Part shown: piece after piece, positions 10,320 through 53,929 of the stretch
Layout: every line of letters begins with the position of its first letter
Numbering within the stretch: position 1 is the stretch's first letter
Assembly: GCA_028023455.1 (NCBI GenBank)
Contig: JAQFVV010000006.1
Span: 7,564,001-7,628,000 of the forward strand
Reading direction: 5' to 3'
DNA length: 64,000 bases
From: Epiperipatus broadwayi
Taxonomy: Eukaryota > Animalia > Onychophora
The notes under the pieces: model-generated
Told to the model about the DNA's origin: nothing
The model's database searches: none
The model's input: only the letters and a program-made list of their open reading frames with translations
Translations under genes and position numbers: made by a program

Positions 10320-11065
10320 TTGGGAGTTTAATTGTAATTATAGGGGATTTGAACCCAGACTTTCAAGCTCCCTTCAGCTATCCACTCCATCTCATACAAC
10401 CAATACACATGGCCACGCACATGTGAAAAAAATAAATGATCTCCACTATAAGTATTTAATACTGAACCAGCATTCATCAGTTGATACAAATCATTATCTC
10501 CCACACATATGCATAATCAGTGCTCGGTTTATATTACGGTAGCAAATTTTCAAACTTTAATGGATAGGCTTCTATCTACTCCACCCTCCAACTTTTTAGC
10601 CATCCATACCATTGAAAATCTGATGATGGAATGCCCAAATCCCTTATTGATGCCAATATCATCATCTTATCTATGTTGACATTAAGTCACTCTAACCTCT
10701 CATATGTAAGACCTTATTCATTTAAATACACAGAAGACAGATGGACAGGATACAGGTTGAAGTATATTTTATAGTTGAGGAATTTGAACTCAGATTCTTC
10801 AGTCTATTCATCTTCCACTTTATTTTAAGCAACCAATACCCATGACCTCATGCATGCAAAAAAAAAGATCCCTAATATATATATATTTCATGCAGTTGGG
10901 CCAGATCATAATCTTCCATATATATATATAATCAGTGCTCAGTTTATATTACAATAGCAATTCCTCAAACTTTAAGGGACAGGCGTCTATCTTCTCACCC
11001 TTCCAATTATTCAACTGACCATTTCATTGAAAGACCGACGATGGGATGCTCAAAGCCCTGGTTGT
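10320..11065 (-). mobile_element. Family A tandem array, about 1.7 units, period about 435 bp
   Basis: (g/a)atttgaac at 10346 and 10781. The unit 1 HHR (10441-10484) has GAAA changed to UAAA; the unit 2 HHR (about 10875-10900) has stem II deleted. Confidence 0.85.
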
Positions 11066-11245
11066 ATATATGTGTGGAAGATTACGATCTGGCCAAACTG
11101 ATGAGTGCTGGTTCTGCACAAAATACGTATATTGAAAATCATGTATCTTTTTCACATTTATGTGGTCATGTGTACCAATTGCTTGAGATGGAGTGGAGGA
11201 TGAGTAGATGGAAAAATCCTGAGTTCAAATCCCTCTATACAAGAA
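11066..11245 (+). mobile_element. Inverted partial family A copy fused to the tandem array; HHR at about 11092-11135 with G12A
   Basis: ctggccaaaCTGATGAgtgctggttctgcacAAAAtacgtatattga ... cctgagttcaaatccctctatac, the reverse complement of the family A left end. Confidence 0.85.
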
Positions 11246-12260: not shown

Positions 12261-12666
12261 GGGTATGAGCACAGACTTTCACAAGACCCACCACTCTCCA
12301 CACTATCTCATAACACTGATACACCTGAACACACATATGTTGAAAAGATAAATAATCACCAATATACGTATTTCATGCTAAACCAGCAATCATCAGTTGG
12401 TCCAGATTACCATCTCTACACATATATGCTACAAGTGCTCAGATATATATTAAGATAGCAAATTCTCCTACTTTAATGGACAGGCTTCAATCTACTCCAC
12501 ACTCCAACTCTTCAACCATCCATCCAATTGAAAATCTGATGATGGAACGCTCAAAGGCCACCCTGAGGCCGAGATTATTGTCACACCCATGTTGACCTAA
12601 AGTCAATCTGACCCCTCATGTACAGGACATAATCCATTAAATACATATACAAGGGATAGGCAGACA
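12261..12666 (-). mobile_element. Family A full-length monomer inserted in the minisatellite
   Basis: Colinear over about 400 bp with 48710-49135 (reverse complement). Confidence 0.9.
12358..12401 (-). ncRNA. Type I hammerhead ribozyme, near-intact
   Basis: ACCAA CUGAUGA U-UGCUG GUU UAGCA-U GAAA U ACGU A UA UUGGU. Only the 10.1-11.1 pair is mismatched; the ACGU loop is palindromic. Confidence 0.8.
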
Positions 12667-40254: not shown

Positions 40255-40950
40255 TAAAAAATCTGAACTCAGACTTTCAAACAATCTTCAATTATCCATA
40301 CTATCTCATACTACTGATACACCTGACCACACACACGTAGAAAAGATAAATAATCACCAGTATATATATTTTGTGCTGAACCAGCACTCATCAGTTGATC
40401 CAGATTATCATCTCCAACACATATATATATATATAATCAGTGCTCAGTTTATATAAAGATAGCAAATCTTTATACTTTAATGGACAGGCTTCAATCTACT
40501 CCAATCTCCAGTTCGTCAGCCATCCATACCATAAAAAAATCTGATGATAGAATGCCCAAATCCTAAGCTGGTGCCATTATTTTTGTTATGTCCAGGTTGA
40601 CCTCAAGTCACATTAACCCATCATGTATAGGACAGTATCCATTTAAATACATAGAAGAGGGATGGGCAGAATGAAGGCTTAATGTGTAAGATTGGAGTAG
40701 ATTAAAGATTGACTCGTAAAGTATAAAGATTTGCCATCTTAATATAAACTGAGCACTGATTATATATATATGGGAGATGATAATCTGGACCAACTGATGA
40801 GTGCTGGTTCAGCATGAAATACATATATTGGTGATTGTTTATCTTTTCTACATGTGTGTGGTCATGTGTATCAGTAGTATGAGATAGTGTGGATAGTTTA
40901 TGGTTGCTTGAAAGTCTGAGTTCAAATCCCCTATATTTACAATTAAGTTC
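40255..40950. mobile_element. Family A head-to-head inverted pair (minus full monomer 40255-40672; plus partial 40690-40947)
   Basis: The arms are reverse complements over about 255 bp. The minus HHR (40356-40399) has G12A; the plus HHR is intact. Confidence 0.92.
40789..40832 (+). ncRNA. Type I hammerhead ribozyme, intact core; predicted cleavage after 40827 (AUA)
   Basis: ACCAA CUGAUGA GUGCUG GUU CAGCAU GAAA U ACAU A UA UUGGU. Stem I extends through a UGG bulge (AAUC/GAUU, AGAUGA/UUAUCU) over about 40772-40846. Confidence 0.9.
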
Positions 40951-41269
40951 CAGGTATAAAAATACCTGTATTTCAAAAGAATTGATTATTGTAAATTTAC
41001 ATCTTCACTCATATGGACATGCAAATCAAATGAACCATGTGAGACTTCATAAGAGAGTATTTTATGGTAACATAAGCATGGACTCTGTGAGAGGTATGCC
41101 CTGATTATGCTATAAGGATTATCTCAAAAATAATCTAAAGAAATGCAATGTCAAGTGGTTCTATTGAGAAGATATGGCAGTGAATAAAATACGTTGGGAA
41201 ATTGCAGTGAAATTTGGTGTTGGGAATCAATCAATAGTAGTCTGTCCAAGAGACAGGTGCAAAGAGTAG

Positions 41270-46622: not shown

Positions 46623-46939
46623 ACTAATGTAATTCTTGCAGTCTCAAAGTCAATTATATATAGAGATAAAAATGAATCCACTTCCATTTGCTATCCAAGA
46701 TCTTGGATGGATTATAGATTAAATAAATAACTGTCAGAATAAATATCAAAAAGAAGCCACAAAATCTCAATTGATTTGATATTCTCCCTAATATTTATTA
46801 TTGTCTGATCTACTAGCTACATAAAATCTTGGATAGCAGACAAAAGTGGGTTAATTTTTCATCTATTCCATGATGGACTTTGATAACTAGGGTGTGTTGC
46901 ATTAATATAGCCAACACTTCAAGGTCTACTATGTGTTTC

Positions 46940-46940
<1 letters not shown>

Positions 46941-47026
<86 letters not shown>

Positions 47027-47086
47027 GAGGAAGAAGAAGAAGAAGGAGGAGGAGAAGGAGAAGAAGAAGAAGAGGTGGAGGAGGAG
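46941..47086. repeat. Compound microsatellite: (TAA) about 28 times, followed by a (GAA/GGA)n purine tract
   Basis: Seen directly. Confidence 0.97.
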
Positions 47087-47621
47087 TAATAATAAAAACA
47101 ATAAAGTATTAATGACACAGAAATAATTTCAATTATCTGCATAACTATTTTCAACTGGAAACCATTTAAATTTGGTTGAAATGAATATCATTATCTAATA
47201 CCCCAAAAATTATGAATTTTAACATTTATAACTTTATCTATTTATTAAAGATTTCATATTTCTATTAACTGTAATAAAAGAAAAATCAATGAAGAAATTT
47301 TGATAAATAGAAATAAAGAACCTTTTATTAATAGACCAAGGGCAAATATTTAAATTCATTAATCTTGGGATCTCACACAACAATGTTCCCTTGTGCCAAA
47401 TTTAAAAGATTTCCATTTGAAAATGGTTATGCAAATAAGTGAAAGTATTTCTGCATTTTATAATGGCTATTGGCAATATTTATTGTCACTGTAAATACTT
47501 TATTCTATTCTTGTTATATCCGTATATATATATTTACATAAGTTCCAATAATTTTTAATGAGTAACACTTTTGATTATGTTGTAATTCTTATCAACTGTA
47601 AAGTAATATTGAAGGTGTATA

Positions 47622-47990
47622 TCACATCATTTTCCATGAGCTGTATATGTCAGTCTTTGCTGATTGTCTACTTATTATAAAATCTTTGAATTTATTTATC
47701 AATATTGCTTCCTTCACTTTTCTCTTTTTATGATTTCCTTCTATTATTATTTGTATATCACTTATATCAAAATTAAATTTAAAATTACAAGATTTTTCAT
47801 GGTCAAAAAATATTGTGGCAGTATTAAATTGTTTATCTATAGTTTTTTTTTTTACCTGATTATATAATAACATGTTATTTTTCCCAGAATACATCTTGAT
47901 TCCCCAATGTATGATTTTTTACAAGCACATATAATCTGATAAATTATATTACTTCTTTGTATTTTAGATATAACATTCCTAGAATTATTA
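47622..47990 (-). mobile_element. Decayed Penelope-like element C-terminal GIY-YIG endonuclease
   Basis: SNIIYQIICACKKSYIGESR (YIGE at 47911-47900), then after a frameshift FKFNFDISDIQIIIEGNHKKRKVKEAILINKFKDFIISRQ...SSWKMM*. Confidence 0.8.
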
Positions 47991-48488
47991 ATTAGTCTAT
48001 TTACATATAAATGGAGATACACCCACATATCAATTTTGCTTTTTTAATCACACTATAGTCAAATATGGAATGATGTATATGATTAAAATTGCATATATGT
48101 CTATGATTTAAAGGTTTATAAGTATTTAAAAGATTTCATTATAAAACAGTATCCATAAAAGTAATAAAAATAGGTAAATCACTTAGGTTCCTGAAAAATA
48201 GCATTACAAAATAAAATGGAGAAAGAATATGAATACAAAGTATTAATAAAAAAGTATACATTGGGTTCAAAAAATAATATTATGATACTAATACAAAAAG
48301 GTATCGAAAACTATAAAATACTAATAATAAATTTAAATATTTGAAAACCAGGCACTCTTCACAAACCTGGGAGCTTAATTGTAAGTATAGGGGATTTGAA
48401 CTCAGATTTTTAAGCACCCTTCAACTATCCACACCACCTCACACAACTGATACACATGACCACACACATGTAGAAAAGACAAATAATC

Positions 48489-48532
48489 ACCAATATACAT
48501 ATTTCATGCTAAACCAGCACTCATCAGTTGGT
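48489..48532 (-). ncRNA. Type I hammerhead ribozyme, intact core; predicted cleavage between 48494 and 48493
   Basis: ACCAA CUGAUGA GUGCUG GUU UAGCAU GAAA U AUGU A UA UUGGU. Confidence 0.9.
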
Positions 48533-48983
48533 CCAGATTATCATCTCCCACACATATATATAATCAGTGCTCAGTTTATATTAAGATAGCAAATCTTCAT
48601 ACTTTAATGGACAGGCTTCAATCCATTCAACCTCCAACTTTTCAGCCATCCATATCATTGAAAATCTGATGATGAAAACTCAAATGCCTGGTTTTCAAAT
48701 ATTTACACATAAAGCTTGTATCCTGTCCATCCCTCTTATATGTATTTAAATGGGTACGGTCCTATACATGAGGGGTCAGAGTGACTTCAGGTCAATATGG
48801 GCATGGCAATAATATTAGCGTCAGCATAGGATTTGAGTTTTCATCATCAGATTTTCAATGATATGGATGGCTGAAAAGTTGGAGGTTGAATGAATTGAAG
48901 CCTGTCCATTAAAGTAGGAAGATTTGCTATCATAATATAAAGTGAGCACTGATTATATATGTGTGTGGGAGATGGTAATCTGG

Positions 48984-49026
48984 ACCAACTGATGAGTGCT
49001 GGTTTAGCACGAAATACTATATTGGT
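48984..49026 (+). ncRNA. Type I hammerhead ribozyme with canonical G10.1-C11.1 pair; predicted cleavage after 49021
   Basis: ACCAA CUGAUGA GUGCUG GUU UAGCAC GAAA U ACU A UA UUGGU (one loop nucleotide deleted). Confidence 0.88.
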
Positions 49027-49860
49027 GATTGTTTATCTTTTCTACATGTGCGTGGTCATGTGTATCAATTGTGTGAGATGGTGTGGATCGTTGAAGGGTG
49101 CTTGAAAATCTGAGTTCAAATCCCCTATACTTACTAATAATACAGTTATGTATGTTATGCCTGCTGTTAAGATTTTAAACAGAAATTCAAGTTGGGGAAA
49201 CTATTTACAATTACAATTTCATTTTTAAAATGAAATTTTGTAAACGAGTAAAGTCTATCTATGGGATATTTTCAATAGTCGCTCGTGAAAAATAATTTCC
49301 TTGACATATATTTCTATTTTTACTACTGATAACACTATGTGATTTTTAGATCTGATCTTAATGACTGATATTCCTTCTTTCTGTCATTTTTTCCATATAT
49401 TTCTGAATTGTTCTACTTCTGCAATATGTTCTGCCATTTGCACTTTCTCCGTTACCTAAGCGGTCTGTGTATGTGGCTTCTGGATCTTGTGGTTCAGGGA
49501 TCACTGCCCAACTGTCACTTCCAGTGTTTGTCACTTTATGAGTACCTGAGCGATGAATCATTTGATTATCTATTTCTTGAATATTTAGACTGCTTTCAAT
49601 GAATGTGGCAATTGTAAATGAAAATAATCATACAACCACTTGCCATATCTCATTTGAAGCCCATGTGTCTGGGTTAAGGAGATGATCTCATGCATTAGGA
49701 AAATGTATACTCTTGGGAAAAGTTAATAGTGCAAAAAAAGACGATGATCATTTCTATATATGAGCCATACTTTAATCCAAACAGCCACCCACAATTATAC
49801 TTTGAAAGTAAATACAGAAGTTTTTGATAATTTCACGACTTTATTATTCAGGTTGTATAA

Positions 49861-49921
49861 GATGGAGTGAATGACAATAGGGAGTTTGAAAGTCTGGGTT
49901 CAAATCCCCTATAATTACAAC
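49861..49921 (+). mobile_element. Terminal fragment of family A
   Basis: gggagtttgaaagtctgggttcaaatcccctataattacaa is the reverse complement of 10332-10372. Confidence 0.8.
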
Positions 49922-50890
49922 TAGCTTAAAAGTATATACAATATACTTGTGTTTAAATATTATATATGAAATAAGTAATAGGTTAGTATGTTTAACTAGT
50001 GACTTGCCGGTTTAATTCCAAAAAATAATCAGTCTTAATCACACACACAAATAATTTGTTAGAGTTTGACTCCATTACATATTATTGAAAGTCATTCATT
50101 TCAATTTAATAACTTTCTGTTAGTTTCCCCCTACTATTTTCATCAGCACTACTCTGCTCACCGACATTGGGTTTAACAAGCAGCTCTGACTCAGTCTAAC
50201 GAGCTTTGACTGCATCTCACTTTTTTTCCTCTTCATTAACGTTCTGCAGACATTTTTAATAACTCTTCTAATTTGCATAAATATTTCATTACTTTCCATA
50301 TGCAAATTAAGATATACAGATTAACTTGCACTTTGCATACATTTTATTTACTCTGCAGTTCATTATTTCTAGAGTGACTACAATGTCTTTTGTATTGACC
50401 AGTTACGAACACCCGTACCCACATGTGTAACTTTATTTATTTCCACAAACCAGTTAATACACGTCAATCATAAAAAGGTGCGAGAACTGCACCATCTCAA
50501 TAACAAGTGTCTTTGAACAACCTGAAGATCCAAGCAGATAATAAGTCATTTTAAAAATGGTAAACATATGATCATCAGGATACAATATCAATTTAATAGC
50601 AGTAATAATGGTAAGTTGCTTGGAAAGTTATGGTGTTTGATCTTGATAATGAATATGCCCGATATGCTTAATAAAAACTGATTACTAATCATTTATATTT
50701 TATGAAAAATGCCTTGCTTGTGTAAATGCTGTCATTTCCTGTGCTTAAATGCTATGACCTCCCAAGCAACAAATCGTTTTCATACTCTAAATTTATCTTC
50801 TTATTTTTTTTTTACAAAACAAAAATGATTTTCAATGTTTTTCAGTAGCTTCATAACTACTCCTGAAGCTATTCTAAATACAGGCTTGTA

Positions 50891-52425: not shown

Positions 52426-52996
52426 TTAAATATAACAAACATATATATAAAATAATCGAAAGATAAGTAAAATGTTATTTAGTTTAGATTTACACATCTT
52501 ATAAAATTCATTGGTCATCTATCTATTCACAAAGTATTACGAAATAATTCTGTATTTGTGCAACAAAAACAAACAAACAATTGAAATAAATAAAAAAACA
52601 AAAGAAGGAAAAGACAGCGGATTTAAACAATAGCAGAAAAAATTAATTGCTTTTACTTTGACCTTTGATCTAAACTGGAATGATGTTTATCAAGTTCACT
52701 CTTTTCCCAGATGTTTATTTCTTTTCAAAGCTATTGAAATTTTTTGACTTCAATGCTATTATTACACACATAAGTCTACCCCTCTAAGAGCAGAAACAAG
52801 CTACCGTTCACACACTTCTTTCTAAACTTGCGGTAATAGATATATGTTAATAGAAATTAAATACTGTATATGTTTTGTTTTTTTTTACTTTTTGCAAGAC
52901 AAAAGCATATAGATTAATTGCAATACATATATTTTGTTTGTAGTCAATTTTAATATTTTACTAAACTGGAGATGACTATTATACTATATATGTCAA

Positions 52997-53068
52997 AGCA
53001 TTGACCGGGAAACGAACCCGGGCCGGCTGCTTAGAAGGCGGCTATGCTAGCCGTTAGGCCACCAATAC
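52997..53068 (-). pseudogene. tRNA-Gly(UCC)-derived pseudogene or SINE monomer, anticodon mutated to UCU
   Basis: GTATTGGTGGCCTAACGGCTAGCATAGCCGCCTTCTAAGCAGCCGGCCCGGGTTCGTTTCCCGGTCAATGCT aligns end to end with metazoan tRNA-Gly-TCC, with stem mismatches. Confidence 0.8.
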
Positions 53069-53929
53069 TTGAATAACGAAATATCTAATCAGCTGCATTC
53101 CATTAACTATATTATTACAGAGTTCTATTTAATCGTCATCAACGCCGGGTGAGCCTATATTTGATATTTAAGGTTGCTCAAAAACGCATTCATTATTGTG
53201 ATAATAAGATCTTTTCATGTAAATGCTGGTCGTACTCATCTTTCACTATTTATATACTTTATACTTACTTAGAGATGTCTCATAATAAAACTAAAATATT
53301 TCTTTACACCTTTTTAATAGTTATATTGTTAGATAGAAGAACTATGACTACTACTAAAATTCGATCAAAATAACCAAGGCAACCATCAAATTTTCGGCCG
53401 CGAGTTTGATTATTTTAGCATGAATTTTAATCTACTTAATCATAAAGAGACACAAATTAAAAAACAACAACAACATTACTGTAAATAAATAAATTATGCT
53501 ATATTTTAGATTTTTTGTTTTAAATCCCACATTTCAGCTAAAGCAGACAGTTCTCTATTTATACAATCCTAACTTATGTAGATCTGAACTTATCTAACAC
53601 CCTTTGCCATCTACTGAATAATAAAAAAATTGATATGTAAATCAACATAACCCTTAATTATTGTTTGCCTTGTGCTGGGAAAACGTTTCAAATAACATAG
53701 TGTAAAGAATGGTTTCTCTTCAGTAAAAAAAAAAAAAAATTCACATTTGGTAATCCCATTTAAATGGTCAGCATCTGAATGAGAATTTAGCTTAAATATG
53801 ATGGCTCCATATCTTGGCTGCACTATCTTATCAATGCTTTTTGTATGAGATCACTGTTTCCCCAGCCACTAGTATGCAGTTATGAACAAGGTACATCGAT
53901 TCAATTGCGACTGCAGTGGGTGAAACAAA

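Follow-up and report, generated by a model that had tools for sequence, protein, structure and literature searches.

A head-to-head pair of hammerhead-bearing repeats in Epiperipatus broadwayi as the probable product of one Penelope-type retrotransposition

How does a short repeat with a hammerhead ribozyme come to lie in two inverted copies, next to the remains of an endonuclease gene of a Penelope-like element (PLE)? This question is raised by a 64,000-nucleotide stretch of the genome of the onychophoran Epiperipatus broadwayi (assembly GCA_028023455.1, contig JAQFVV010000006.1, forward strand positions 7,564,001 to 7,628,000), which was analysed over its whole length and is referred to below as the window; all positions are those of the window. 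The initial annotation of this DNA, made from the letters alone, had described an inverted repeat with two ribozymes beside a PLE endonuclease relic and proposed that the repeat family (here family A) is either the terminal repeat of that PLE or a partner mobilised by it. The analysis presented here favours the latter: the segment 48330-49134 is very probably the product of a single Penelope-type retrotransposition of family A, a non-autonomous, hammerhead-bearing and retrozyme-like element.

Anatomy of the composite insertion and its likely origin

The inverted repeat is composed of two arms, located at 48375-48685 (minus strand) and 48828-49134 (plus strand) and sharing 94–96% sequence identity. 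Their near-identity, already pointed out in the initial annotation, was confirmed by a repeat search of the window, by BLAST and by an aligned count. The repeat search returned two blocks separated by a single 1-nt indel (48500-48685/48831-49016, 186 nt, 96% identity, and 48375-48497/49018-49140, 123 nt, 93% identity), BLAST comparison of the left with the right arm gave 94.2% identity across 311 nt, and 17 substitutions plus one indel were counted in the shared part. The arms are mutually closest relatives, with 94% identity to each other versus at most 91% to any other family-A copy, and their divergence of approximately 6% arose after the insertion. At three of the differences (49010, 49051 and 49089) a CpG kept in the right arm corresponds to TpG or ApG in the left one, and at 49017 a G was lost from the right arm itself. 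These four differences point to CpG decay, and the CpG pattern of the arms suggests that the family-A master had a C at ribozyme position 11.1. Decay of the arms is neutral, CpG losses included, with no signal of selection in the comparison between them.

The 143-nt "spacer" between the arms is homologous to the 5' parts of the family-A copies at 40564-40689, 12563-12663 and 10673-10754. It is therefore the 5' part of the right copy, and the locus consists of a full-length copy and a 5'-truncated inverted copy, arranged head-to-head. The full-length monomer (48703-49134, plus strand, approximately 435 nt) was delimited by homology and by the common 5' end of the copies: in the ribozyme-sense alignment three family-A copies with unrelated upstream flanks start at one position, which identifies 48703-49134 as a complete unit, with its 5' part at 48703-48827 and the right arm at 48828-49134. 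The left arm (48375-48685, minus strand), as defined by the repeat search, BLAST and the alignment of copies, corresponds to the 3' 310 nt of the monomer.

The two copies differ at their 3' ends. The inverted truncated copy alone continues, according to the alignment, into a 45-nt tail extension (48330-48374, minus strand), which recurs on the family-A copies at 10328, 76 and 40717 and is absent from the right copy. Five copies have retained, within this tail, a small hairpin of 8 pairs, one of them compensatory. A further piece of the tail is present at the inner junction, where a 20-nt fragment (48686-48705, plus strand) situated just 5' of the full-length copy represents the distal end, i.e. 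the last 20 nt, of the tail; it matches 48334-48353 with 100% identity in inverted orientation.

Comparison of the flanks revealed that the entire composite is bracketed by an 11-nt direct repeat, TACTAATAATA, found at 48319-48329 on the left and at 49132-49142 on the right, where its first three bases overlap the terminal TAC of the element. In random placements within the window, a shared 11-mer or longer was found at such flanks in 0.3% of cases. This single target-site duplication encloses the pair, and none is found around each arm separately. Moreover, the identity between the arms stops exactly at the 3' ends of the element and not inside the flanking DNA. The locus is thus a clean natural example with both copies of the target-site duplication preserved.

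Family A is dense in the window, where it occupies at least 8 loci per 64 kb, some of them solo full-length monomers and partial tandems. The plan described above recurs at 40261-40977, where a tailless full copy (40261-40689, minus strand), whose hammerhead is dead by a G12>A substitution, is joined to an inverted truncated copy with a tail (40690-40977), whose hammerhead is intact; the tail is here on the right arm only. A separate 11-nt duplication, AGAATTGATTA, brackets this sister insertion; the null frequency is 0.003 for each of the two loci. Since the truncation point of the inverted arm and the inner junction differ between the two loci (48685/48686 versus 40689/40690), they arose independently and are not duplicates of a single foldback unit. 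At a third locus (10328-11240) a tailed full copy is accompanied upstream by a partial copy in tandem, with no tail at their junction (the partial tandem spans 10328-11063), and by an inverted partial copy; every hammerhead is mutated there and the tail is again at one side only.

Such an arrangement is known from PLEs, whose insertions carry an inverted 5'-truncated copy and a tail of 30–40 bp at one end (Craig et al. 2021, PMC8557442). The PLE protein was shown in vitro to cleave and extend both DNA strands, with a preference for AT-rich targets containing ATT, and its reverse transcriptase (RT) starts at a pair of neighbouring internal sites close to a stem-loop, the tail being the sequence between these sites (Frangieh et al. 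2024, PMC11167929). The locus resembles this published insertion architecture (PMC8557442; PMC11167929) in the inverted 5'-truncated copy placed at the 5' end of a full copy, in the tail at one end, in the flanking duplication, whose length is variable in PLEs, in the AT-rich target with ATT and in the position of the hammerhead inside the repeated part. It differs in that the family-A unit is only approximately 435 nt long and lacks an open reading frame (ORF), in the length of the tail (45 nt versus 30–40 bp) and in the 20-nt tail fragment at the inner junction. In both head-to-head loci a 5'-truncated copy in inverted orientation adjoins the 5' end of a fuller one, an 11-nt duplication surrounds the composite in an AT-rich target, and the tail is one-sided (on the left arm at 48330-49134, on the right arm at 40261-40977).

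The proposed sequence of events is as follows. A PLE endonuclease would cut AT-rich DNA with a stagger, and both DNA ends would then prime reverse transcription on family-A RNA. One cDNA would start at the proximal start site and extend over the full length of the element plus 20 nt of upstream tail sequence, whereas the other would start approximately 45 nt further 3', at the distal site, and so carry the tail, and would stop after approximately 310 nt. Head-to-head joining of the two cDNAs and fill-in of the stagger would produce the composite with its 11-nt duplication. For a full monomer to be copied together with 20 nt of tail from upstream of it, the template RNA must have had a tail ahead of the monomer, as in a tandem or circular RNA. 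We infer the priming steps from published PLE biochemistry and set them beside the anatomy, the duplication, the plan of the second locus and the ribozyme motifs observed here. The locus agrees with the prediction from the lizard PLE studied in vitro in 2024, namely that both DNA ends are primed and that each start site is used once. In three of three loci of the window the tail is on exactly one end; if this held genome-wide, it might even indicate, as a smaller possibility, a coordinated use of the two RT start sites by the two DNA ends, which was not seen in vitro (Frangieh et al. 2024, PMC11167929).

Two expectations of the initial annotation are supported by these data: that a PLE-style inverted copy at the 5' end accounts for the arrangement (truncated inverted copy, one-sided tail, duplication), and that family A is a partner mobilised by PLE machinery (head-to-head copies, tail at one end, duplication, AT-rich target). 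Several points nevertheless weigh against this interpretation. The autonomous PLE partner of family A is a putative one, and the 3' end of family A has no similarity to the sole PLE relic in reach. The tail, at 45 nt, is somewhat above the published 30–40 bp, and a flank search revealed no clear target-site duplication at 10328-11240, the duplication search at this locus and at two solo copies yielding weak 7- to 9-mers only. Gene conversion could in principle maintain or alter the identity of the arms. Furthermore, the priming steps, as proposed, were worked out in vitro for a single lizard PLE, and the single event is read from the structure of the locus itself.

The locus is an already described, ordinary PLE-type footprint, here of a short non-coding repeat, and as such adds little that is new. 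Loci of this kind, counted genome-wide, could nevertheless serve as a test of the model in vivo and help to identify the autonomous partner on which family A depends. In genome annotation, "foldback" repeats of this type are accordingly best treated as single PLE-type insertions.

Two further observations concern family A as a whole. A 71-nt fragment at 49853-49923 is 76% similar to the family-A 3' end followed by the start of the tail, and is probably a severely 5'-truncated copy; within its neighbourhood only this stretch is repeated in RNA-labelled sequencing runs. In addition, the 3' module of family A (49100-49134 and equivalents) contains a B-box-like 11-mer, whose sequence is GAGTTCAAATCC in the two arms studied here and GGTTCAAATCC in certain other copies. 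Despite this 11-mer, ARAGORN calls no tRNA inside family A, and a reading of the family as a tRNA-derived short interspersed element was dropped.

The endonuclease relic and other possible origins

The initial annotation had noticed a frameshifted GIY-YIG segment close to the repeat, and this was borne out. The relic is divided between two minus-strand frames. The first piece (47852-48028) shows in translation a GIY motif (reading IIY), two cysteines, YIG and an R, and ends at a stop codon or frameshift, whereas the second, in the other frame (47622-47894), contains the downstream H, H, E and N, followed by a stop codon. The window contains a single instance of the pattern GIY-C..C-YIG-R, versus 0.0025 expected, and two cysteines directly between GIY and YIG (the CCHH motif) are a hallmark of PLE endonucleases (PMC8557442). 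In a language-model Atlas, 52 of the 100 named nearest clusters of the first piece (all eukaryotic) and 65 of the 100 of the second (eukaryotic) carry GIY-YIG, which may be taken as a lead only. Sequence searches with the two pieces gave no match in Pfam at E-values up to 10, no homology in the PDB and in two word-based searches, and, using phmmer against 1.84 billion proteins, two matches, both of which were low-complexity (compositional). No RT coding signal was found upstream of the relic (48028-48330) or past the insertion, in unique DNA (49219-49824); the missing upstream RT is consistent with 5' truncation of the relic. The relic is accepted here as a decayed, 5'-truncated PLE copy, separate from the family-A insertion and older than it. 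It does lie close to the repeat, as had been stated, at a distance of about 300–350 bp and not 400 bp.

This proximity is the starting point of the first rival explanation, in which family A is the terminal repeat (pseudo-long terminal repeat, pLTR) of the PLE that left the relic at 47622-48028, so that relic and repeat are one element. The relic and the left arm are indeed on one strand, approximately 300 bp apart, and hammerheads do occur in PLE terminal repeats (PMC4209133). The duplication at 48319-48329/49132-49142, however, encloses the family-A pair only and leaves the relic outside; downstream of the stop codon of the endonuclease, where the 3' repeat would be expected, nothing resembles family A beyond a 14-nt match (E-value 0.11); and no RT coding is found on either side. 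With eight family-A loci per 64 kb, a relic would be found within 400 bp of one of them approximately 20% of the time by chance, and the nearby endonuclease is no evidence of linkage. That family A represents the terminal repeat of the PLE behind the relic, one of the two alternatives of the initial annotation, is not supported and is extremely improbable. Hardly more can be said for a DNA-based origin, in which a foldback or a DNA transposon of approximately 805 bp resembling miniature inverted-repeat transposable elements, and ending in inverted repeats of 310 bp, would have moved as DNA. In its favour are the length of these terminal repeats, the direct duplication at their flanks and the folding of the whole unit into a single long hairpin. 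Yet family A also exists as solo full-length monomers and partial tandems, and the two head-to-head loci differ in inner junction and arm length. The arms are asymmetric as well, with the tail at one end only and the 125-nt 5' part on one arm only, and the 11-nt duplication and the frequent 5' truncation suit target-primed reverse transcription. We consider this origin, too, to be most improbable.

The pair could also have been assembled stepwise, by two independent insertions of family A side by side in opposite orientation, or by a later local inverted duplication. The density of the family, with at least 8 loci per 64 kb, and the difference of approximately 6% between the arms would allow for this. 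Against it speak the one duplication around the pair and the lack of one per arm, the fact that the arms are each other's closest relatives, the end of their identity exactly at the 3' ends of the element and the recurrence of the whole structure at 40261-40977, all of which leave a stepwise origin very unlikely.

Hammerhead motifs and hairpin RNA

Both arms carry a hammerhead motif. A strict descriptor, requiring the segments CUGANGA and GAAA, a UH cleavage site, 4 bp in helix I and no fewer than 4 bp in helix II, has three matches in the 64-kb window, i.e. both arms and the sister copy at 40794, versus 0.013 expected per 64 kb under a first-order Markov null. In each arm the core CUGAUGA is followed by helix II, GAAA, a short helix III and UA, with the strands of helix I flanking, and both can be assigned a complete type I hammerhead core on the basis of the motif. 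From C3 to H17, as placed by descriptor and alignment, the core occupies 48494-48527 (minus strand) in the left arm and 48989-49021 (plus strand) in the right arm, with predicted cuts after 48494 on the minus strand and between 49021 and 49022, respectively. The ribozymes had been described as intact, and for the catalytic core this holds in both arms. It does not hold for loop III, for which the family consensus is the palindromic ACGU, and which reads AUGU in the left arm and is shortened to ACU by a 1-nt deletion in the right arm; in the left arm, in addition, the substitution C11.1>U results in a helix II closed by a G.U pair.

The family-A hammerhead has a helix I with an internal loop, a helix II of 5–6 bp and a helix III of 2 bp. 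Helices I and II are recovered in the predicted fold of the left-arm core. Among the ten family-A copies of the window, the proposed helices are paired in 90.6% of cells, compared with at most 51% for slid partners; their alignment contains one compensatory pair among the hammerhead helices, and covariation in these 10 related copies does not beat the shuffle control. Rfam searches detected no hammerhead at gathering score in the whole window, nor at E-values up to 10 over 3.5 kb; the best score, obtained for the right-arm core on a 131-nt stretch, was 14.9 bits for Hammerhead_3 (E-value 0.92), against a threshold of 48.5. A sub-threshold score is to be expected, because the metazoan-type motif has a minimal, 2-bp helix III. 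The short palindromic helix III of metazoan hammerheads leads to a dependence on a second copy (Cervera and de la Pena 2014, PMC4209133). Compared with the canonical metazoan type I hammerhead (PMC4209133), the complete core, the internal loop of helix I, helix II of 5–6 bp, the 2-bp helix III and the consensus loop ACGU are shared, whereas the loss of the palindrome in both arms (AUGU and ACU), the G.U pair in the left helix II and the score below the Rfam gathering threshold are not. Hammerhead pairs on opposite strands, 100–700 bp apart, were noted earlier (Cervera and de la Pena 2014, PMC4209133). In a PLE, ribozyme cleavage was found to be protein-assisted and dispensable for insertion (Frangieh et al. 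2024, PMC11167929), and the ribozymes at this locus are passengers of the family-A element.

Family A resembles the metazoan retrozymes lacking long terminal repeats (Cervera and de la Pena 2020, PMC7229834), as it is a short, AT-rich and non-coding repeat of a few hundred nucleotides with a type I hammerhead, which is dispersed, partly tandem and abundant in RNA-labelled libraries. Animal retrozymes are regarded as non-autonomous PLE derivatives that originated from PLE terminal repeats (Li et al. 2026, preprint 10.64898/2026.07.22.740005). The locus departs from them in being an inverted pair and not a tandem array, so that no monomer can be released by double cleavage, and in that the predicted ribozyme cut lies away from the ends of family A. 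As for the RNA circles of retrozymes, family A is known here from sequence and from contigs, in which circles cannot be seen.

The initial annotation had further suggested that a read-through transcript of the locus would fold into long double-stranded RNA (dsRNA), in which each ribozyme is masked by pairing with the antisense of the other. As a prediction the fold is physically correct, with -541.6 kcal/mol (z = -52). In head-to-head copies, transcription always reaches the antisense arm ahead of the sense ribozyme, which makes masking plausible. Each transcript of such a pair would hold one sense copy, and poor cleavage would be expected from read-through, because efficient cleavage with a 2-bp helix III and a palindromic loop depends on a protein or on another sense copy. 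A further step is to regard the locus in its present state as a hairpin-RNA gene, which would give rise to approximately 305 bp of dsRNA with masked ribozymes and, after Dicer processing, to small interfering RNAs (siRNAs) silencing family A. The idea is not new, since it was published for Penelope inverted repeats: in transformed D. melanogaster, rearranged Penelope copies form inverted repeats to which siRNAs were reported to map exactly (Evgen'ev 2013, PMC3681739). The two cases are alike in that long inverted repeats from a Penelope-type insertion could yield dsRNA; they differ in that siRNAs were measured in that work, whereas the dsRNA of this locus is a predicted fold. The very high abundance of family-A-like sequence in RNA-labelled libraries would also suit a transcribed hairpin. 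No contig bridges the unique flanks, however, and the depth of the flanks is 0 in all four runs; moreover, these libraries are contig sets of uncertain kind, in which DNA carry-over of a high-copy repeat would look alike, and the arms decay neutrally, CpG losses included, without a signal of selection. A role of the locus as a hairpin-RNA gene therefore seems rather unlikely.

The four RNA-labelled runs, available as contigs only, contain thousands of family-A-like contigs with a depth peak around the ribozyme, but yielded no transcript specific to this locus and no small RNAs. Contig depth of this kind reflects the abundance of the whole family, possibly even DNA carry-over, and is not expression of the locus. 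Over the ribozyme-centred segment 48411-48612 the summed contig depth in the four runs, which are labelled as different organisms, is approximately 30 times that of the 3' end of the element, while a DNA repeat that is purely 5'-truncated would give the opposite pattern, with a deeper 3' end. The ribozyme-centred depth may be due to several families sharing the ribozyme region or to RNA abundance. The long hairpin also attracted an Rfam match to the plant family MIR7533 at 48606-48910 (100.9 bits, gathering score 230), which was rejected as a structure-driven artefact.

Surrounding DNA

In the unique DNA to the right of the insertion, a 67-codon ORF (49358-49561, minus strand), GC-richer as judged by eye from its translation, might be an exon; the four longest ORFs of the window gave no match in Pfam. 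On the 3' side of the relic lies another inverted repeat (47118-47227/47344-47453), with 110-nt arms of 77% identity, a 116-nt gap and no hammerhead core, which shows low depth in one of the RNA-labelled runs. Approximately 500 bp past the stop codon of the relic, long microsatellites of the (TAA)n and (GAA)n type extend over 46930-47110 and give rise to spurious low-complexity ORFs. Microsatellites are reported to be favoured targets of PLEs. The sole tRNA of the window, a tRNA-Arg (TCT) gene, was called by ARAGORN at 52996-53069 on the minus strand.

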